Positions 8,001-31,000 of a stretch of 42,131 nucleotides of DNA are shown piece after piece (positions within the stretch are counted from its first letter, which is position 1; each line of letters begins with the position of its first letter). Made by a program: the position numbers and the translations under genes. The stretch comes from Bipalium vagum (Eukaryota): NCBI GenBank assembly GCA_037834085.1, contig JBBMKC010262065.1, positions 1 to 42,131 on the forward strand, given 5' to 3'. Under the pieces are notes generated by a model. That model did not search any database. It was not told the origin of the DNA and saw nothing but the letters and a program-made list of their open reading frames with translations.

Positions 8001-11000
8001 TTTTTTCAATCAATATAACAAATTTTTATTTTATTTAAATAAATCGAATTTATGAAAAAAATATTTGCTTATCTAAAGCAATAACAGGGATGTAAATGTA
8101 AGTCTTGTCCATTAAAGACTGCTTATTTCTTGTAAAGTTGTACTTTTGAACAAATCTATTGAATCTATTCAACAAATTATTCTAGAATTTTGAAAAGCTT
8201 TGAATACAAAACTGATTATTATACTGTTCGTGCGCTGATCACAAAATTTGAGAAATATGGGACAGTTCAAGAAGTGGGCGAAAAGAAAATGCAGAAATGA
8301 TAAATTGTAAAGCCAGTTGCAGAACAGACTTTGCTTTTACAGGGTTTTCATCTCAATTTAATTATTTTAAACATCAATTTAGTTTTTAACTTTAATTTAG
8401 TATAATTTTTTTTACAAAAGTTAAGTTTCAAGTTAAAAAAAACTAAATTGAGATGTAAGCCCTATAAGTCCTTCTTCCATATTAACTAATAGAAAATCTT
8501 CCGTGTTTGGAGCTTGTTTGCGGACACAATTCTTCCACTTCGAAAATATATTTTCGATCGGATTGAGAAACGGAGAATAAGACGGTAAGAATACAACATT
8601 ATGTTCATTTCGCTCGATGAAGTCAGTAACCGTTTGATTTTTATGGAATGATACATTATCCATAATAAGCACATATTTCTTGTAATTATGATCATCAAAA
8701 AATCCTAAAAATTCTTCCGCATAACCCAAGAAATAAGATGTGATAAGTGGTAAAATTGATAATTTTTAAAATAAAATATAAGAACTTATTTGAACAGCAT
8801 TGTATTATTTAAACTAAGTTGTAATTTAACTAAATTTAATTTGTATATAATTCAATATTTTTGTTGACTATAATTATAATTATCACACTAAAATTACTGA
8901 TGAGCAAATTTTTTGGCCACCCTTAATAATATATTTTAATCAAATAAACTTATGTATATTAAAAATATTAAGTATTCATAAAATTTTCAAGTTAATTATT
9001 TTAACATTTGTTTATTCAATTATTTATTTTATACAAGTTCAAATTTATTGGCCACCATATCGGATTTTAAGTAAATCTTTGATTTTATTAGAATTAAATA
9101 TTTTATTTACAAAATATATATTTAGTTATGAAGGCTGGTGATCAAAAAAACGAAGTTTTAGTTTTACGAGAAGAAAGATGGGCTTATTCAAGAATTTCGA
9201 AGAAAACAAAATTATCCAAAAATTGTGTTAGGGGTATATGCCGAAAGCGAGCAGTAAAGAAGCAAATGAAAAGAGGACCGAAGCCTAAAATAAATCTAAC
9301 CATTAAGTTAAAAATTAAGAGACAAATAAGAAATCTGAAGGACAATTGTGAAAAGGTAAATTGTAAGAAATCGATTAATACCTGTAATATTCCAGCTTCA
9401 CGATTTACCGTTGCACGTTACCTTAAGAAAAAAAACATGACTTACAAAAAAATAAGAAAAAGTTTCCCACTTAAACCATTGGACAAGGCTAAACGGTGTG
9501 ATTTAGCTAAGAAGTGGTTGGCAGAAAATCACCTATGGGAGCGAACCATTTTTTCAGATGACTGGAGAACTGGAGAAATCAGAAATCATTTATCGTCCCG
9601 GGCACCAGAAGAAAGGTGGGGGAATTATGGTATGGGGAATGGTTTTCCCAAATGGTCTGTTATCTTTTAGAATATTAAATAGAGACTTCAAAAGTTAGGA
9701 TTACATAGATTTACTTTGCAAAACTATTGTACCAATTTCTAAATTGAATTATGAGGACAACTTCTGGTTCCTACAGGACAATTTCAGAATCCATACCCCA
9801 AGGATCGTTTAAAAATGGATGGATATTGCCAATTTCCAATTATTACATGGCCTGCTCGATCTCCAGACTTGAATACAGTGGAAAAAATTTGGTAAATTTT
9901 GGAAGATGTCATCTATGACAAGTTACCACTTATGTCTGAAAGTGGTTTAACGGAAGGATCACGGAAAGCCTTTCACTTGATCAATACGATCAAACGATTT
10001 ATTAAAAATCTTTATGATGCTTTAGAGGACATTTAGTGAAAGTAATTGTAAAAAATGATAATCAAATAAATAATAATTGTGTTGCTTTTTTTCAATGGGT
10101 GGCCAATAATTATTCACATATGAAAAATAAAATTTTGTAAATATCAAATATAAAAGTTCAAAACTATAATTAAAAAGTGCGAAAAACAACTTTTAACATT
10201 TTTCTATGAAAATACTTAACACAAAAGTTTCTTAAAATGATTAAAATTGCCTTTTTCAAGGTGGCCAATAAATTTCCTCATCAGGATTGAATTTGGATTT
10301 TCTTTATCAATTTTAATTTTATACATAAAATTTTTATGTGAGAATTAATAATTATAAAAAGTATAATTTAAACTGTTTAGTAAATTCTTATCAGGCCAAA
10401 TTTAAGCAAAATGTCCGACATTGAGAAATGGATGATTAAGGCCTACCACGAAGCCAGAAAATCAAAAAGATGGATCGGAAATAAGTTAGACAGAAATGAA
10501 AGCTCCATAAAATATTATTTGGAAAATGGAGATAGCAAAATCGTAAGCCTGACCCAAAGACAAAGATTTCGCCCAAAACGAAACGATTGATTATTCGCAA
10601 AGCCAGCAATAAATCGTTTTCAAACTCGACAATTAAACATGAACTTAAATTAAATGTAAGCAAGGAGACTATCCACCGTGTTATCAACAATTCCCAAGTC
10701 TTAAAATACTAAAAATGATGGTGAAAACATCACTAAAAACTGAACACAAATTGAAGCATTTGCAATGGGCGAAAATAAAGTTTCGCGGAGCGATGAATGG
10801 AAGCAGGTGGTCATCTGGAGTGACGAAAAGAAATTTAATTTAGACGGACCAGATGCCCATGCATACTATTGGCATGATTTGAGAAAAGAAATCATAATGA
10901 CACTGGGCGAAGGATCTTTAATGATATGGACCTGTTTCAATTTCAGCGGCAGGTCGAGTCTGGCAACTGTTTCCGGCAATCTAAATCAATCAGACTCCTG

Positions 11001-14000: not shown

Positions 14001-17000
14001 TCCATTGAAAGATCCGTCTTTGATTTCGAAGCATAAAATTCCTATAAATTTGATTTAATAAAAGACAGATGACAAAACAATGAAACCTGACATTTTAATA
14101 GCAACCGTGCAGCTGATATGTGACTAAAATGTGATCAAATTTAAATAGAAAAAATCGATTTTTTTTAATATATTTCTAAATGATTTTCTATATATTTCTG
14201 AATAATTTTCTATATATTTTGAATAATTTTCTATATATTTTGAATATAATTATATATATTTTTGCATATAATTTTACAATTAACTTTTAATTGTTTACAA
14301 CTCCAGATTAATTAGAAAATTTCTTACTTTAGTTTCTATATATTAATTTCATTTTCCAGACGTTATCTCTCATATTTTTTCGAAATCATGTATATATAAT
14401 TATATTTCATAGTTTTCCTCTTAATCGTTCCATCAAATCTTTCCAATTTTTTCTATTGTCAAAGCAATTATTCTTCGTGTATTCCTTGCTTGTTGATATT
14501 CTAAATATCATCTGTCTTGTTGCTTTTATCGTGTACTGAGTATATGCTATCTTGGTACTCCAATTCTTCCACCCATGTTCATGCGTCAATACAATCTGTC
14601 CTTGTACAGAATTGTCCTTCTATGAGACGCCATTATTGTTATGAGGCTTGTTTTCGGAAAGAGTAGTTGAATTCATATTCATTGGGTTCATAAGATTGGT
14701 GTGGTTATTCAATTCAAAGGTTTTACTTTTATCTACCTGAAAATCTTTGGATAAATTTATCCATTATTACTTTTTATCGACCTATCATCTTGTTTATTGG
14801 TGTTTAATTTAATTTACTGTAATTAATCTTGACGTTATAATATTTTTTAAATATTAAATTACATTTTATCTTTATAGGTAAATAATATTATCGAAAAGAA
14901 GAATGAATCAGTAAAAAAGCTAGAAGAGATGAAAATTGAATTTGATTTAATTTCAAAGGAACTGGAATATAACAAAATAGACAAAAAAAATTATGAACAA
15001 ATTATCAAAACTCAGAAAATAGAAATTGATAGTGCGAAGACTGATAATTCATATATAAATAACATAATAGGTTTGTATATTTGTCTTACTATTATAACCT
15101 CATGAAAAATAAATTATTATTTTATTATTATCAGATTTTTTATTATTACATCAAATTTTGTTTATTTAGAAAATAGAAATAATGAAATTGAACGGTTAAC
15201 AGCTGAGCGAGATTACTACTTTCAAATTTTAAATGAAAAAACGGAAGATTTAACTAATGTGAAAGGAGAGAAAGATAGATTACTCTTAATGGTAACATTA
15301 GTAATTGTATTCTTAATAATATAATATAATTCTTTTCGTTTAACCTCAAATCAACTTTATATTTTAAGCAAAAAATAATTCGAAAATTTTTATTTGAAGT
15401 TACGAAATATAAAGCTGGAATACTTAGCTGTATTGTTAGTTGAAAATATATTGATCTGTTATGAACATAAATGGTGTCATAATTTCAATTTGTCATAGAA
15501 GTTACCAAATTTTCAAGTTTATATTTATCTTCTAAACAACTAATGACCACCGATTGCAACTAAATAAAAGTGAATTGCTTTTCACTAGCATAAACCTTAC
15601 GAACAATCACTCCCCATAAGTTTTCAGTGAGATATAGATTCGATGATTACAGTTCATAATTTGAATATTCCAATTTAGTGATAAATGAAAGTAGATTGTC
15701 TGTTAAGTGTTTCTGATACTCATTGATTTTGATTACCGGAAAGTATTGCTAGACTCGGCTTGACACTGAAGTTAAAATATATTAAAATCATAAAAGAGCC
15801 TCCGCCAGTGTGTTTGAAAAAATAGTAGGCATAGCCAAATTAAACTTCTTGTCACTACAGATGATATGCTATATACAGATTGTTAGTGAAAATTAATCGG
15901 ATACCGGGATTCAAACCCGGGACCTTCACATGCGCATGCACTGCTCTGACCGCTGAGCTACATCCCCCGACTAACTTTCTATTTATCTCACAACCCCCTC
16001 CTTTAAAGCTCACATCCATATCCTTAACCGCCCCGAGTCTCTTTACTTCTATTTCCATTCAATTCCTTTACATTTTTACTTCCGAGACCTCGTCCGCTGG
16101 TTGGTGTCCTGATGTGGTCGCCATGTTAGTGAAAATTAATCGGAGATACCGGGACCTTCACATGCGCATGCACTGCTCTGACCCCTGAGCTACATCCCCC
16201 GACTAACTTTCAATTTATCTCACACAGATGATTCGTTTTATGTTATACTTTGTACTATCAGCAACTAAAAATATTATTTAAAGATTAATTTCTTTTTAAA
16301 TTAATCAAAATCTTAATTTTAAAATGTGTGGCAATTAATTTGTGTCGCATGGTATAGGATGCGTAAGATATTTGAGGACACATTGATGTCTCAGGGAAAA
16401 CAGAAATCTAATAAAAACTATGAACTTTATTGATAAAAAATTAATTAAGTTTTTTCAAAATTTTTTTCAAAAAAACCACCACCAGCTTGGATCGCTGCTT
16501 CCATACGAGGTCGAAATTTCCTTCATAACTTAACTAGTCATCGAAATATTTAGTCAAAATTTATTGAGAAAAAATTGTTGGGTCATCTTGTGAAGTTAAT
16601 TGATAAGAAAGCTAAAAGTACATTTGTTTGAACTTATTCATTTCCATTAAAAAATTAAATTTCTTATATGGGGTGAACAGACTTTTTACGAGAGCTGTAA
16701 AAAATAACAAAATATAAATTTCATACAATGTTCATAAAAATGTTCTTTGTTATTGTGAGAATTGTTGAAAAAGAAATATTGATTACTGACAAATGCAAAA
16801 GATTTTATCTAGGATTTTTTTCATATCTATATCTATTTTATATATGTATTTTATATGAAATTTATGATGTAGTTTTAATATCTACTACTAATAATGATTG
16901 GAACAAGATCGAACTTTAAAAGAAAAATATTTCTAGAAGCATCCTTGAAGACTTTTGACTACCTTTCCAAATCAATTTTTTGTGTAAATAAAATGGCCTA

Positions 17001-22073: not shown

Positions 22074-25000
22074 TTACAGTTCAACTTCTTTAGATGAAAG
22101 GTCGGAATTTTTTGAATCATAATTCAATTGGAAACTAGAATGTGACAAATTATTACAAGCAATACACAGGGAGTGGTGATAAGATTTTCGAACACCATAT
22201 ATTGGAGAATGGGTTTTTGGAGATTCTACGTAAAAATCTCGTAATGAATCTGAATTTTCAAAATCAATTTTAAGATCCAATAGATTCGTTCTATTTGTTT
22301 TAAAATTAAAGCCGTTAAAGACCCATGGATTATAAGAATGAATCGAATCTTCATTATTGATTTCATTTTCAGAATGTATTTGACCCTGTAAATTGAAAAT
22401 TATCAATATACTTAATGGTAACTGATTGAAAGAAAAACAAGATAAAATTCAAATATTATAATATTCAATGAATAAATGAGCATAAAGATTAACAGATATT
22501 AGTTATTATAATTTCCGTTTTCTTAAGAATAACTGAAAATGTTTTTTTAATCAACAATAGAAATTACATATTTCATAATGTTGCGAACTGGTCCATTCAT
22601 TTAGTTCAAAATCATGAAGAAACCAAATTATCAATTTAGTTCAAAAGTGCAAAAAATCAAAGTTATGGATTATGTATAGATAAATATTGGGAATTTGATG
22701 TCATTCTTATCTGTTAATTTAGGCTATTTGGTACATTAAATTTTACAAGATTGAAAGTTATTAGAGACTAAATAAATTGTCTAGACAAATATGTGGATTT
22801 GAAATTGATGCAAAATTCACATCGAGTCTTCATGAATTCAAGCTTTGTAAATTTTAAGTCTACTCAAAAACTTATTTCATTCTAGTACCATTTCTTTTCA
22901 GGCTGATAGAATTTTGGTATAGATATATTCTAGTAGAATTGAAATTTTTTAAACTTCTTTCTACAATAAAATTGTGATACCAGACGTTTTTATGGAAAAT
23001 GTAAAATTATAAGATTCTTAAAATCGATGAAAAATATTCAAAAAAAAATTACAGAAAACTAATAATTAATATAAATCAAATAAAAAGTTTAAAAAAATAG
23101 AAATTTTTTCCAACATTTCATCATTATGATTTAAAGAATAAATCCCAATGAATTTTGCTATATTGTACATAACTTTTTCGAAAATAATTTGAAATGTATG
23201 CCTATATTATACACTTAATTTAAAGTCTGGATGAATTTCGCTATGACACGTTATTACCATTTGTATAAATTAAATAAATATATAACTGAAAATTTGAGTC
23301 ATTTATTATAACTTATAAATGAAATGGTAAAATTGTAACTCATCAGATTTTATTAAATGCGTAATAATAAATATTTATTTACTTCTATTTAAAATATATA
23401 AATTTGTGAATTTACTGAATTTTTTTTATTAAACTGATAAATGCATTCCAAGTCTTATTAGAATTTAATGTTCTCCAAATAAATTCTAAAATATTATCAT
23501 TGATATCATCATTGTTTCTGCTTCTTGATTTGATTGACTGTTTTAATCCAGACCTGAATAGTTAATTTTCAAAATGTTAATACTAAACATAAGAAAACCA
23601 AGCTTCTTTGACTGCGTGCAGTCGAACCCTGTTAAAACGAAAACCCCGTTTTAGTGAAAGTAATTCGCGTTCCGGCAATTATAAGACCTTTCACGTGTAA
23701 AAAAACCTCAACTTTAACGAGCCCTAGTCAGAGTAGTCCATGTGCATGTGAAAGGTTCTTGATTCGAATCCCAGTATCTCCCATTAATTTTCAACTAACT
23801 TGGCGACCTAACTTGGATTCCTAAAAATTGAATCCTCTCTTGTATGATCTAAGGCAAATTCTTTTACCAACTAAATGTTGTTTAGATGCATGATTTAATC
23901 GCTTTTGTGATGGACTTGAAATTTTTCTTTTTCAAATAAAAACTCAACGCCTTTATCTTCATCGAAAAAGATGTTATGCAATGCATAAATTGAAGGAAAT
24001 TTTCAACCTTAGATTTATATTATATATAATATGTTTAATTATAAAATTTATATAATAATTTGTCATTTATTATGCAATTAAACCGTAAATCTTAATTTAT
24101 TAATTAGATTTTATTACAACAAAAGATAGTACTCAAATTTGATAAATAGATTGAATAATGTAATTAAGAAAACCAGCAGTTTACTAACGTTTCTGATGAA
24201 GTACAAATGAATATCAAGAAAACTGGATTATCAATTAATAACATTTTTTTTTATTAAAAGAACTCAATATCATTTAATGAACAGGATTTTGTTCAAACAG
24301 ATTAAGCAATTTATTTTCACGAAGCATATGAAAATTCCATTAATTTGAATGTATTATATTATTAACAGATTAAACATTTAAAATTAAGCATTTGTGCATT
24401 TATAGATGCGACCATATAAATATCATTGTTATGAAGCCAAAATAATTTTGAGATGATGAATCATATCTATAAAGTTATAAAATTAGGAACACCATTGTTG
24501 TCTCTAGAACATTAAATATTAAAATTTTTAAAATGCATTTGTGAGGATTGTAAGTAAAAAATTATTTTATTGTTGTGTAAATAATACGGTTATCGGTAAT
24601 TATTTTGTTTTTGAATACACTTTGAAATTTTCTTTATTTGTTATGATTCTAATTATATAAAAAATGAAATTGTCGTAGCTTCCAGCAATAATATAAAATC
24701 AATCATATTTATAAACCCAATAATAAATAAGATTTCAGATAGGCTTCATTCTTCTAATAACCTCAAATTAACTTTTCAAAATAAAGAAAAAATATATTCA
24801 GCTTTGTGAGATGGATACTAAACGAGATATCAAGATTCAATAAACAGTTACATGATATGAGGAGGCTAATCAAGCCTGGGGAATTTTTTAAAAATATTTT
24901 AAAAGTATTATTGACATTTTAAAAAATAAACTTAAAATTTTAATAAAAAAAGGAATTTCCAGGTTTGAGAAAATTTGTTTAAATATTATTTGAATTATCA

Positions 25001-28000
25001 CTTAATAAAGCTATTCAAAAAAATGAGAGTAATTTGCTGAACATAAATCTAAGCGAAAGAGGGACAGATGACTGAGCCGAGATCCTCAATTCTGCTTTAC
25101 AAAAAAATTTGATTAAGTCCGGCTGAAATGGTATTTGGTAAAAAGAACTACCGAGATAGAATATATAAGGTAGCTGAAGAACAGATTTCGAAAAGAAAAT
25201 GAAAGATATGAAAACCCATGTGGTCCAAAAGTCCATGACCAAAGATACGTCTTACAAAACCAAAACGGAAAAAGAATTGAAAGCAATGTCAAGAAAATTT
25301 AAAAATTTTGAGAACGGTTGTATGAGGAGGCTAATTAGACCTGGGGAATTTTCCGTTATTGGCCAAATATTTTAAAATTGGTCGGAGTTCTGGACAAATG
25401 AGAAGATTAGCACTCTTCGGTACAATATTGACCCCAATCTCATTGTACCAGTCCATGGCCGATTTTATATAGTGACATGTTGCCAAATCAGGCCAAAGCA
25501 CAACTGTTACGTTATGAACAAGTAACATAGGAAGAAGTAGTTTCTGCAAGCACTCCTCAACATAAATAGTTTGGTTCATAATACTACAGGTTACAAAAAC
25601 TCTGCTTTTCAAACCACATTTACAAATTGCTTGCCAAACCAAATATTTTCCAGGACAAAAAGCTGACCAGGAAACTGATTGAAGTCTGCCTTGACATAAG
25701 TTTCGTCATCCATTATCATGCAGTCAAGGTTGTGCACGATATTGTCATACAGTTTTCGTGAACGATATTTGGCGGTTGCCTGCTGTTTAACGTTTCTGTT
25801 TTGAACCTTGCTCTTTGCGGACTTTTTGAACATAACCAGGCGAAATTTTAACTTTTTAGCCTTATTTTGTGAAATTTACTTACCACTTCCTTGACCTTTT
25901 TCTCTGAGACAAATCCATTCTTTCGTCCACTTATAACTTTTCTTACTGTGCTTAATCGTTTAACAAAGTTTTTAAGCACAAGTGTTACCGTTGATTTGGC
26001 AAAATTAGGATTTTTGCAATATCTCTGTGAGATAAATCCACATTTTCCAGCTTTCTGCGCACAATTAATTCGCGAATACTTTCTTTTATTGAGACCGTTT
26101 TCAAATTTTTATAGAAAATAAAAAATTTTAGATTCTTTATTATAAATTAATGATTCAGCTATAGATCTGTATGCTTACCTATATTTTTAAAATTATATCT
26201 GAGGTTTGTATGTGACAAGTTTTTTCCGTATACACTCTATTTACGATACAAGATGAATTAGAAGAAAAAACGAATCATGATTTTTTGTATGGAATTAATA
26301 TTTCAAAATAAACTTACAATGAGCTCCTGACTGTCAACATTTAAGTTACTGGTATTATTATTTTTAAAGATTTTCATTGAATGTCTTCGGGAACTAAATA
26401 AATTTTCATGTGGGCTCCCTTGATATTGATATTTATTATTCGGTCTAGTTGTACTATATTTTATATCCCTTTTCAAGTCTAGAGTAGATGGTAACAATAA
26501 TATTGATGGAGATCTGGAATAAGAATTCTTCAGTTTTCTATTACAGCTATTCTTTTGTATGTTAGAATCGAGATGATTAGTAAAGGAAAAATTATTTTCC
26601 ATTTTTTTGTTATAAGCGCCAATACTCTTATCTTTACATTGACAGTTTCTCGAGTTTGAATTTTCCTAAAGTAATGCAAAAATTAAATAAAAAAATAAAA
26701 TAACATTTAATTGGGATTATATATTTACAGGAACCCATTTCAGATAAATTTTTTTTAAAATGAACAAATAATTTTTAATGCAATAAACAATTTCAAAATT
26801 AAATTATTTGTGCATATTTCCATCTATCTGTCAATTTCACTATCTTATGAAATATTAATCATAGTTATATGTTAGTCTTTTCATTTATTATTATTCCGAA
26901 CTTTTATTTAAAAACTTAACTCTGATAATTTCTTAAAATTAATATCAAAATTTAATTTTAAAAACTTTATTGAATCTTTTAATTTTGTAAATCTTATAAT
27001 TATTTAAGTATAAAATTCTTATTATGACTTTTATTCCACAGGCATAAATAAACATCACTCGTTGGCAGAAATGTATTGGCTCGTATGGACTTTATTTTGA
27101 TTAATAAAGTTTATTTTCCATTGAATTATGACATTTTTACTTTTATAGTTGTAAAACAACATTATTTTTGCACCAACCTAATAGATACAAAAATTTGTAG
27201 ATTAAAAAAAATTGAGTTTTAGACTTATGATTTTTTACAAATCTAATCTTTTCTTCAAAAAAAATCATTTCTTCATTATAATCTTTATTTTTCATAGTCT
27301 AAGTAAAAAATTATTTGTGTATAGAAAAATAAAGATTTTGATTTGCATTAGTAATTCTCATATGCTTTCAAGATATGATATTTTTAAAATGAAATACATA
27401 TCGAGGAACCGAAGATAGGGGTGAATTATAATGTTATTAGATGTTAATAAATCCATAAATTTTAAAAAAGCACTAAAAATAAGTGTTTTGTATTTTTCGG
27501 TTCCCTTAATTTTAATAATTCAAAAAACGATTCATAAAAGGTCTGAAAATTTTGAATGTCAATCAATAATTATATATTATTGTAAAAAATATTTAATACC
27601 CAATACTTATTAAAATTCGAATAATTACAATTTGGATTTCAAAATTTTCCTTCTCAATGGAATATCAAAAACTTACAGGTTTTGATGTATAAGATTTAGA
27701 ATTCATATTGGTAAAAAGATAACTTAAATGCCTAGACCCAGAAAAATTGTCCTTGTATTTTTCGTTTCCTCTGCTTGAATGAACAAGTCGAATGTTTTTA
27801 GAATCATCACACAATAAATTTCTATTTAGAGTAGATAAAGAACGAATTACTGGAATTGGAGTAATCATGGTGATTGGAATTTCAGAATTACCATCAACAT
27901 TATTATTATTACGAATTTCCCTATCATAGGAACAAATTGGCATATTCTCGTTGAAAATTTCGCCAAGTAAATAATCTGGCAATCCAAATTCTCTCAAGGC

Positions 28001-31000
28001 CTGCAATCTTAATTGATGAAAAACCATCATCCAACTGACACATGGCATAAATAGAGCTCTTTGTACAATGACACTTGATTGTAGATCCTTAACTCTTTTG
28101 TGGATTCCATTTATCATTCGACAATTTAAATAAAAATGTTTTTTGTTTGATTGTGTATTATTTAATGTGTTATTTGGTTCTATAATACAATTCTGTTGCA
28201 CTGACAAAAATGGAAATTGAGATTGTGAAGGTGGTATAAGAATAGGATGAATTCTACCAGGAGGATGAATACTTTCTATTTCATGAATAACTGAATCGTC
28301 ATAGCATTTTATCACCTTGTTATTACGGGATCGTTCGTTAATTAATAATTTCAATTGTTCATAGAAAGAAACAACAAATCTTGGTCCTTGGAATAAGGCT
28401 GGCTGTTTTTTATTATCAAATATTGATTCTGGTAGATCTAAACTTAAGATATTGTACTTAGGTTCATTAGTTCTTGACATAAATATTTCTGTCCTCATTT
28501 CACGAGGATTTATCATTCTAAACCATGACTGTTTTAATTGTACCGAATTGAATGGGTCACTCATTTCTAATATATTCGGTATAGATGGTATTACTCCTCT
28601 CCGGATTAAAGAATACATGAGACTTTCTGTTCCAGGAAAAAAATGATTAAAGTTTATATAGGGTAGTAAATCATTAATGATTTCGGCTAGAGTTGGATCA
28701 GTAAGATGTTTGTTCTTAGACTGTGTTCGTTTTGAATAAAAATCTTTCAGAAGAATAACAATACTGCTATCTTTATTCGTTTCTTTTGGGATAACAGGTA
28801 AATCGAGCTGTCCTTCACCCCATTTTACAATAGCATTAAGAATTTCGGATTCTGGAGCCTGGGTAAATTTTGATGAAACAATTTCAATTAAATCACTTTT
28901 AGTCATTAATGATAAATACGGTGAATATATAATTTGCATAAATTCTTCTCTAATCCAAGAAATCACATGTCTTCTAATAATTTCTGATCCAAAAGATTGC
29001 GAACTCCAACGAAGAATTTCTAAAAAATTATTGATAGAAATATGTTTAATAATGAGATCCTCACAAAGATGACACAATAGTTTGAATTCAATAAATGAAC
29101 CAATTTGATAAAGTTGCATCACATCGCGAATACAGTTAATACAATTGGGTAAAAAAGTATGAATATAAAGACCGGCTGCTGAAAGATTTTCGGAAATAGG
29201 ATGCGAAAAATTGGACACATTATTATTACTGTTATTTTGCATTCGTAAAGAAGCAGTTAGATCAAGGGTTGGTGATCGACGATCAGGATATTGCCTATTA
29301 ACAATAAGCTGCAAATTTAGCTGACCTGTATACATACAATATAATAATACGCGAGCATATCTGTGAGATATAATATTTTCTTCTAGTGTTATTCTCATAG
29401 GGGAACTAGTTATTGACTCAAATGAAGTCATATAATTTTGATGAGAAGTACTGCTCAATTCTCGATTTTCATTATTCTGTTCGATCAACTTCAATTCTAT
29501 AATTCGCTTGAAAAAAGCAGACCGAGCAGCCAAAAGAGCACGATGACATGGAACATCATATGAAACACCCAATGGAAAGTTACTTTCATAATCAATGGTT
29601 GTTTCATCAACTTGTTCGCAATTGCTATTGTTACTTGTATTAAAATGACAATGGCGGATAAAATTCATATACTGTGGATTTTGACTAAAAGTTTTAGCAT
29701 CAAAAGGCGAAAAATCTAAATTCAAGAAATCGGTGGTTTGAACGAATACTAATACACAATCAGTATCCGAAGAATCTTCAAAAAGTCTTTTCATATCAAA
29801 CTGTAAACGATTTGGTAAATGAAACTTTTCTCTAAGTAAATAAATCATATCCCAATTATCAATATGATCTTCGTCGATATCAAGCTGCTCTGTGTAAATG
29901 TATTGAAGAATACTTTTAAAAACAGTTGGCGTAACAGATGAATTGTCCAGATGAATAGGAATTGGTTTTTTTAAGTGCTTCTGGTGTTGACAAGAACCAC
30001 AAATAGTTGAACCAAAACTATGATAACTACTTAACATAATATCTGGCTGAGCTTTCCATGAATAAAAGCACTGTCTGAAAAAAACGGATCGTATGGACAA
30101 CAAAGCACGGTGAACTTTAAAAATTTCTCCTCTATAAGAAATTTCAGTATCAGCAAATAGTCCAGTTTTCAGAAGAAAATCTAAATCTTGCTGAATAATA
30201 AATGACATTTAATAATCAATCAAAATAATAGGTCATTTTAGTTTAGCATTTCCCATGTAGGAAAAAAGCTATTCAGTTAATTATTTAAAATTAAAGATTA
30301 ACATTCCATATAGAACAATGGAAGTAGTAAGCCATTAAATATTTTTGCAAATTACAAAATAATTTCTTATTATTCGCAATATATTAGGGTCATTCATAAG
30401 TAATTTCATTTTCTTGTTTAAGTATTTCAAAGTAATTTTTTTAGTTGATAAACAATTTGAATATATTGATTTATATATCAATTTGAAACTTAATAAATTT
30501 TCTACCAAAAATATACGAAGCGGAAGTTGAAGATGTGGTCTCAATTCGTATAGCCCAAATCTGGCTCAAAAAATTTAATGAAGGTGACAATGATCTATAC
30601 AATCAACCACCTTCCGGTAGGCTACTAAATGTGAATCAAGAAGCGCTATTCAATGTTTTTGAAACCAAACCATCGACTAGCATTCTAATATTGTCTGCTG
30701 ATCTAGGCTTTTCCCAAGCAACAGTTGTCCCACAGCTTGTCAAAAATCAGGCAAAGCGATATATGGACACGTGTAAAAAGCTGCTGGAAAATCCGCGGGA
30801 TGATAATTTCATTAGACAATTTAGAACTTCTGATTTAAAGTTTATATATTTTACCAATCCTCACAAAAATAATCAGTGGTTGGACCCTGGGCAAGTGACA
30901 AAACCTGTTCCAAAAAGAGACCGATCCTCACAGAAGACATTATTGTGAGTTTGGTGGAATTACGAAGGCATGATCCACTTCGAATTTATTCCAAATATTA

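Follow-up and report, generated by a model that had tools for sequence, protein, structure and literature searches.

A Helenus-type miniature LTR retrotransposon with tRNA-Ala-like terminal repeats and candidate Ty3/Gypsy partners in the flatworm Bipalium vagum

A stretch of 42,131 nucleotides from the flatworm Bipalium vagum (GenBank assembly GCA_037834085.1, contig JBBMKC010262065.1, positions 1 to 42,131; hereafter the window) carries at 15881-16224 of its minus strand what is very probably a copy of a ~360-bp non-autonomous retrotransposon with long terminal repeats (LTRs), of the Helenus/TRIMp3 type, with candidate Ty3/Gypsy partners and a putative cycle based on RNA polymerase III (Pol III). 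A preliminary description of the window had read this locus as a complete terminal-repeat retrotransposon in miniature (TRIM) with LTRs fashioned out of a tRNA-Ala gene, and an alignment of 19 copies together with an Rfam match bore this out. By direct reading and repeat finding, the coordinates and sizes given there were reproduced, as were the 112-bp and 101-bp TG..CA LTRs, the primer-binding site (PBS), the polypurine tract (PPT) and the target-site duplication (TSD) CAGAT. Genome-wide searches were performed in the window's own 440-Mb assembly, and all statements below rest on individual copies of the TRIM and the Gypsy-like elements rather than on a consensus.

The window copy is 344 bp long and reads on the minus strand, and therefore the 101-bp repeat is its 5' LTR. 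From 16224 to 15881 its parts follow one another as the 101-bp LTR, the PBS, ~100 nt of purine-rich spacer, the PPT, one T and the 112-bp LTR (Table 1). Both LTRs start with TGTGAG and end with CTAACA, and in the orientation of the element ATCTG stands on either side of the copy. No open reading frame (ORF) was found in the 131-bp interior. The two LTRs are 98.0% identical, with 2 substitutions and 3 indel events between them. A 13-bp deletion between two TCCCGG repeats stripped the 5' LTR of its T arm and B box and left the acceptor stem with its G3:U70 pair, and the 3' LTR is 2 nt shorter than the 114-115-bp LTR of the family, TC being absent from the 3' acceptor arm. The tRNA-Ala-like unit that had been described in the LTRs was recovered with the Rfam tRNA model, which matches 15899-15965 on the minus strand with 31.4 bits and so exceeds its gathering score of 29; the accompanying claim that each LTR holds an A box and a B box did not stand, since both boxes are present in the 112-bp LTR only and the unit is intact in neither LTR. 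The window copy is fairly young yet already damaged, and ranks among the younger of the 19 sampled copies.

Table 1. Parts of the TRIM copy in the window, in window coordinates.
Feature	Position	Strand	Basis or remark
TSD beside 3' LTR, CAGAT on the plus strand (ATCTG in element orientation)	15876-15880		Identical to 16225-16229
3' LTR, 112 bp, TG..CA	15881-15992	-	Repeat finding and alignment with sister copies
Sole run of four T (T4) in the RNA strand of 3' LTR, shortly (a few nt) past the tRNA-like unit	15889-15892	-	Direct reading
tRNA-Ala-like unit of 3' LTR	15898-15967	-	Rfam RF00005 match within
B box GGTTTGAATCC of 3' LTR	15907-15917	-	Read in alignment
A box TAGCTCAGCGG of 3' LTR	15950-15960	-	Read in alignment
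Interior, non-coding, 131 bp	15993-16123	-	69% A+G; RNA strand without T4
PPT AAAGGAGGGGG, 1 nt ahead of 3' LTR	15994-16004	-	Conserved in 19 aligned copies
PBS TGGCGACCACATCAGGAC, 18 nt, abutting 5' LTR	16106-16123	-	Complementary to 3' end plus CCA of host tRNA-Arg(ACG)
5' LTR, 101 bp, TG..CA	16124-16224	-	T4 at 16132-16135
TSD beside 5' LTR, CAGAT	16225-16229		Identical to 15876-15880

The genome-wide search returned 2885 first-look candidates, and the 40 that were scored are 85-95% identical. Among the fetched loci were 19 copies with two full LTRs, which kept the LTR-PBS-interior-PPT-LTR order in every case (19/19), with interiors of 129-132 bp in an element of ~360 bp. A perfect 5-bp TSD flanks 13 of the 19, and in 2 more 4 of the 5 nt match; at the local base composition a perfect 5-bp match would occur by chance in ~0.003 per copy, and chance therefore does not account for these duplications. 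The preliminary description had made its reading depend on such copies elsewhere in the genome, the alternative being a chance tandem duplication of a tRNA-derived short interspersed nuclear element (SINE). We give that alternative practically no credence: only the two repeats themselves speak for it, whereas PBS, PPT and TG..CA tips recur unchanged in hundreds of copies, with TSDs fixed at 5 bp, and an A-rich or LINE-like (long interspersed nuclear element) tail is absent. It was rejected on the 13 perfect TSDs and the 19 aligned full copies. Identity between the two LTRs of one element ranges from 89.6 to 99.1% over the 19 copies. Counts of exact 17-mers or 14-mers in the genome gave 1306 matches to the 5' end of the LTR, 1062 to the tRNA core, 235 to the junction of 5' LTR and PBS and 266 to the PBS 14-mer. 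The genome thus holds thousands of LTRs and hundreds of interiors, and at a ratio of ~5:1 solo LTRs must make up many of the copies. In the single public run containing the locus (15870-16239), the summed contig depth is ~25-35 in the flanks, ~18,000 in the interior and 50,000-208,000 in the LTRs, with peaks over the tRNA core; this depth is not a copy number, but its order agrees with the word counts. The contigs of this run match the assembly in the flanks of the window copy, and none listed there carries an empty-site joint, which is no evidence on polymorphism or expression.

Undamaged LTRs of the family (114-115 bp) consist of 25 nt with the TG tip, a 73-nt tRNA-Ala-like pseudogene at LTR positions 26-98, and ~17 nt with one T4 and the CA tip. 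In the alignment, the acceptor stem of the tRNA-like unit reads GGGGATG/TATCTCC and includes G3:U70, the alanine identity pair, and in these undamaged LTRs the A box is TAGCTCAGCGG and the B box GGTTCGAATCC. When ARAGORN was run on sister LTRs, 21 were called 'tRNA-???' with a two-letter anticodon, that is, a cloverleaf with a defective anticodon arm; it called no tRNA anywhere in the window, because the 5' LTR of the window copy is without T arm and B box and its 3' LTR without 2 nt of the acceptor arm. Host tRNA-Ala genes have the D arm in common with the unit and differ from it in the anticodon stem. Given this comparison and the abnormal anticodon arm, the unit is therefore a pseudo-tRNA, and a non-functional tRNA unit has been reported for most Helenus families (Kojima 2024, PMC10886601). 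In the genome the unit is found mostly within this LTR context. Conservation per segment across 38 LTRs is near-uniform (0.95-0.99), and so is uninformative on selection.

The 13-bp T-arm deletion between TCCCGG repeats recurs in identical form in 5 of the 38 LTRs, at unrelated loci (5' LTR of L001, L002 and L005; 3' LTR of L029 and L030), and further LTR deletions cluster in the repeat-rich anticodon region. The T-arm and anticodon deletions mark slippage hot spots within the tRNA-like unit. At G000:C240925:1119-1148 lies a sequence resembling tRNA-Ala(CGC). Its anticodon arm, AGTCCATTCGCA, is nearer to the TRIM unit than those of the remaining host tRNA-Ala genes, and the sequence may either be related to the source gene or represent a variant of the TRIM in which the anticodon loop is normal.

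In order to place the family, we compared it with described elements. Helenus, or TRIMp3, was described in 2024 for families of 311-1263 bp (Kojima 2024, PMC10886601). The present family agrees with it in being a TRIM with a tRNA-derived unit bearing A and B boxes in each LTR (the window copy retains the B box in its 3' LTR alone), in a PBS complementary to the 3' end of a tRNA, a PPT, a lack of coding capacity and a non-functional tRNA, as well as in a size (~360 bp) within the published range, a Gypsy-type PBS sharing as in other animals, and common solo LTRs. It differs in its flatworm host, in the pairing of an Ala-like head with a tRNA-Arg(ACG) primer, and in its TSD. Kojima 2024 tied the animal families to Gypsy and 4-bp TSDs and the fungal families to Copia and 5-bp TSDs, with 5-bp TSDs in plant families as well, and Table S1 of that work gives 4 bp for all animal families whose TSD was determined, flatworms being absent (PMC10886601). 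The 4-bp length in animals that the preliminary description had quoted was thus correct. In the present family the TSD is fixed at 5 bp instead of the 4 bp fixed in animal Helenus; TSD length lies outside the Helenus definition. The TRIM fits the published structural definition of Helenus/TRIMp3, so that the design is known and the family is new. The suggestion of a possibly new family may fairly be kept, then, whereas a new lineage, or the term SINE-LTR hybrid, is not needed for a structure that falls within that definition. Two short motifs of the family were absent from the consensus file of Kojima 2024, a weak test, as line breaks could hide them, and among the papers searched no later one extends TRIMp3.

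Two other kinds of element invite comparison. Cassandra of plants and Ajax of nemerteans are likewise TRIMs with a fragment of a Pol III gene in the LTR, and Ajax has 5-bp TSDs in an animal, but the promoters in their LTRs derive from 5S rRNA and not from tRNA. Within 15700-16400 no 5S rRNA match was obtained, and the only Rfam match at E up to 1 was to tRNA. The tRNA-derived SINEs (SINE2) are also short, high in copy number and headed by a tRNA-like sequence with A and B boxes; in contrast to the TRIM, which has all the LTR hallmarks, their tails derive from LINEs or are A-rich, their TSDs are variable, and they lack LTR, PBS and PPT.

The preliminary description had further proposed that the element is mobilised in trans by an autonomous LTR retrotransposon, and support for this comes from Ty3/Gypsy-like elements in this genome with the same PBS, PPT and LTR tips, as well as from hybrids. 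The host tRNA-Arg(ACG) gene in locus L049 ends ...GTCCTGGCGTGGTCG, and the PBS pairs with the 3' end plus CCA of this tRNA at 18 of 18 positions in L002, at 17 of 18 in most copies and at 16 of 18 in the window copy. A search for a foreign LTR end (...TAACA) joined to the PBS start TGGCGACCAC, with the TRIM's own LTR excluded, gave 117 exact matches, of which 30 were fetched. Nine of the 30 loci belong to one class, class A, whose interior enters a gag-like frame past the 14 PBS nt in common with the TRIM. In the class A copy L088, the LTRs measure 153-155 bp with tips TGTGAGG...GCTAACA, the first 14 PBS nt are as in the TRIM, the PPT is TTAAAGGAGTGGCA compared with TTTAAAGGAGGGGGA in the TRIM, and the TSD is ATAAT. 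Its open pieces match, in order, RVT_1 (E 2.5e-25), RT_RNaseH_2 (E 1.3e-21) and, weakly, an integrase SH3 domain (SH3_Tf2-1), and a sister copy of class A carries a CCHC knuckle (zf-CCHC); the integrase core is deleted in the class A copy that was read. A search of the Gypsy-like pieces against NCBIfam returned no match. Among solved proteins, the closest to the class A reverse transcriptase (RT) is the Ty3 RT (4OL8, E 4.4e-34), well ahead of retroviral RTs; this relationship and the domain order place class A in Ty3/Gypsy. Open frames of ~1000 aa occur in relatives, for example one of 1138 aa on contig C194885. Ty3 itself makes 5-bp TSDs, and a TSD of this length is therefore ordinary for the Ty3/Gypsy superfamily. 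The Gypsy elements of this genome (class A, as in L088, and the family with 279-bp LTRs met in L064) resemble the TRIM in the start of the tRNA-Arg PBS, a similar PPT, the tips TGTGAG...CTAACA and the 5-bp TSD, and differ from it in having gag-pol remnants and in LTR bodies that are unrelated and without a tRNA unit.

In 11 of the 30 sampled loci, a foreign LTR is followed by the common PBS, a TRIM interior and a tRNA LTR. One of these hybrids, L064, is flanked by the perfect 5-bp TSD GATGT; its 5' LTR is 279 bp long, starts with TGTGAGA and belongs to a family of at least 529 candidates whose matches have sharp 1-279 borders. One such 279-bp LTR lies on contig C53595, in the same orientation as a Gypsy-like RT and ~2 kb upstream of it, and a decayed Arg-type PBS follows two other copies. 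Around the hybrids L056 and L084 a putative TSD matches at only 4/5 nt, in AT-rich flanks. Both L083 and L058 carry the TRIM interior and the first 68 nt of the tRNA LTR where Gypsy-like elements have their leader, and L083 runs on into the gag found in the L062 element. Little weight attaches to L037 (class A LTR, TRIM interior, tRNA LTR, class A interior), whose contig is only 421 bp long. The hybrid parts are 73-95% identical to the TRIM, individually diverged and old, which argues against assembly artefacts. The simplest reading of the hybrids is that TRIM and Gypsy nucleic acids were present in one reverse-transcription complex and exchanged strands at the common PBS. Taken together with the PBS, PPT and LTR tips in common, the hybrids indicate Gypsy partners, and the TRIM is apparently moved in trans by elements of the Ty3/Gypsy type. 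More tentatively, and with the odds rather against it, the hybrids might be fossils of strand transfer between co-packaged TRIM and Gypsy at the tRNA-Arg PBS, in which case LTR swapping would be regular and could have put the tRNA LTR onto a Gypsy-compatible interior, as opposed to the insertion of a SINE into an LTR.

A mover of the Copia or BEL/Pao type could also be envisaged, given that fungal and plant Helenus families with 5-bp TSDs were linked to Copia (Kojima 2024, PMC10886601). However, we consider it very unlikely, as the elements with the same PBS, PPT and tips are ordered RT, RNase H and integrase remnant, carry RT_RNaseH_2 and have the Ty3 RT as their best solved relative. In addition, the hybrid with their LTR (L064) has a 5-bp TSD, which is the length produced by Ty3. 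A Copia partner was rejected on the RT_RNaseH_2 domain, the Ty3 RT relationship and this hybrid.

How the TRIM would be transcribed is suggested by the distribution of T runs. On the RNA strand, each LTR has one T4, at positions 103-106 just past the tRNA-like unit, in 37 of 38 LTRs; the interiors have T4 in 0 of 19, with 24 A4 runs in total. Host tRNA genes end in T4-T6, T4 being the weak end of that range. We propose that Pol III would start at the tRNA-like unit of the 5' LTR, read through the weak T4 of that LTR and stop at the T4 of the 3' LTR, rather as in retroviruses the poly(A) signal is passed over in its 5' copy. The 3' T4 as terminator would set the border of R and U5, resulting in a U3 of ~25 nt, an R of ~80 nt and a U5 of ~8 nt. 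The RNA of ~330 nt would be packaged with Gypsy RNA and primed by tRNA-Arg, and Gypsy proteins would reverse-transcribe and integrate it. Pol III transcription of the TRIM is something that we only infer.

Alternatively, the template RNA may not come from Pol III at all but from read-through or neighbouring RNA polymerase II (Pol II) transcription, with the tRNA-like unit a passenger or an RNase P/RNase Z processing signal that defines the RNA ends. Against a Pol III template stand the T4 that in each LTR lies a few nt past the tRNA-like unit and upstream of the PBS, the termination of host tRNA genes at such runs, and the lack of statistical significance in the absence of T4 from the interior. 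We nevertheless regard a Pol II template as rather unlikely, since the 25-nt U3 is too short for a usual Pol II promoter, and since the LTR cycle requires the same R at each RNA end, which an internal Pol III start and a terminator in the LTR give directly. Moreover, the A box, the B box and T4 are retained in nearly all LTRs, and for Cassandra, the 5S counterpart, transcription from its Pol III promoter has been reported (PMC10886601).

Several observations weigh against the Pol III-driven, Gypsy-assisted cycle favoured here. An efficient Pol III stop at the 5' LTR T4, upstream of the PBS, would yield only an 80-nt RNA, and interiors with 17% T would lack T4 by chance in 92% of cases. A search of public sequencing runs for the locus returned a single one, made up of DNA contigs, and no RNA run. 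On the side of the partner, every Gypsy-like copy that was read is broken, and its 5-bp TSD is a single AT-rich example (ATAAT in L088). The hybrids could have arisen through recombination between genomic copies and not in a particle, an alternative for those without a TSD. Finally, none of the 19 copies has an identical LTR pair, so current activity is not indicated.

These results add a large Helenus-type family from flatworms, a phylum outside the 2024 catalogue, and break the catalogue's rule of 4-bp TSDs in animal families, TSD length tracking the integrase of the partner and not the host kingdom. With the common PBS, PPT and tips, and the hybrids, the family comes with a concrete candidate partner and preserves, as a natural record, how a non-autonomous element and its helpers have recombined. 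In practical terms, thousands of tRNA-Ala look-alikes in the genome will swell the number of predicted tRNA genes and bring sites resembling Pol III promoters into the vicinity of genes. The findings extend what the field already knows and are not a surprise.

Some further observations concern the primer tRNA. Locus L049 (G000:C262788:1-595) holds two tRNA-Arg(ACG) genes 523 bp apart on one short contig, which may represent a tandem unit, and the short contigs L044-L046 contain only the 3' half of tRNA-Arg(ACG), followed by a T6 terminator. At L063, L069, L078, L082, L071 and L060, a different LTR of ~300 bp (TGTAAGG...GTAACTAACA) is followed by 12-18 nt of tRNA-Arg PBS and then by unrelated DNA; in L069 this unit has an (AAT)n microsatellite on both sides. 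At L041-L043, 40-76 nt complementary to tRNA-Arg(ACG) stand after the LTR ends. No TSD was found around the LTR-plus-short-PBS units, which in their layout look like inserted plus-strand strong-stop products, some of them reading through the primer tRNA.

Other observations concern individual copies of the family. In L004, L005, L010, L011 and L030 the 5' LTR ends ...TTTTCACTAACA but the 3' LTR ends ...TTTTCAACTAACA, and the reverse was seen once (L023); slippage or LTRs of mixed parentage could produce such mismatched ends within one copy. In L026, L027 and three more contigs, a larger repeat, found at least 5 times, encloses a TRIM copy whose 5' LTR has an internal deletion. The upstream flanks of L026 and L027 are common to both and all matches begin at query position 76; a single insertion has been copied together with its surroundings.

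Elsewhere in the window, positions 23727-23817 of the plus strand hold an old, 5'-truncated LTR of the same TRIM family, whose start falls within the D arm of the tRNA-like unit; just ~9 nt of PBS (TTGGCGACC) come after it, and then unrelated DNA. A BTBD7-like ORF of animal type (847 aa) occupies 27665-30208 on the minus strand and ends in a stop, and the only homologue obtained, of 837 aa, aligns with it over 97% of its length at 78% identity. Because the ORF ends in a stop and the homologue is aligned over 97%, the LTR fragment probably lies downstream of the BTBD7-like gene and not within an intron. At 9128-9670 on the plus strand, a 180-aa ORF with a weak match to a Tc3-type transposase helix-turn-helix (E 9e-5) is probably a Tc1/mariner remnant.

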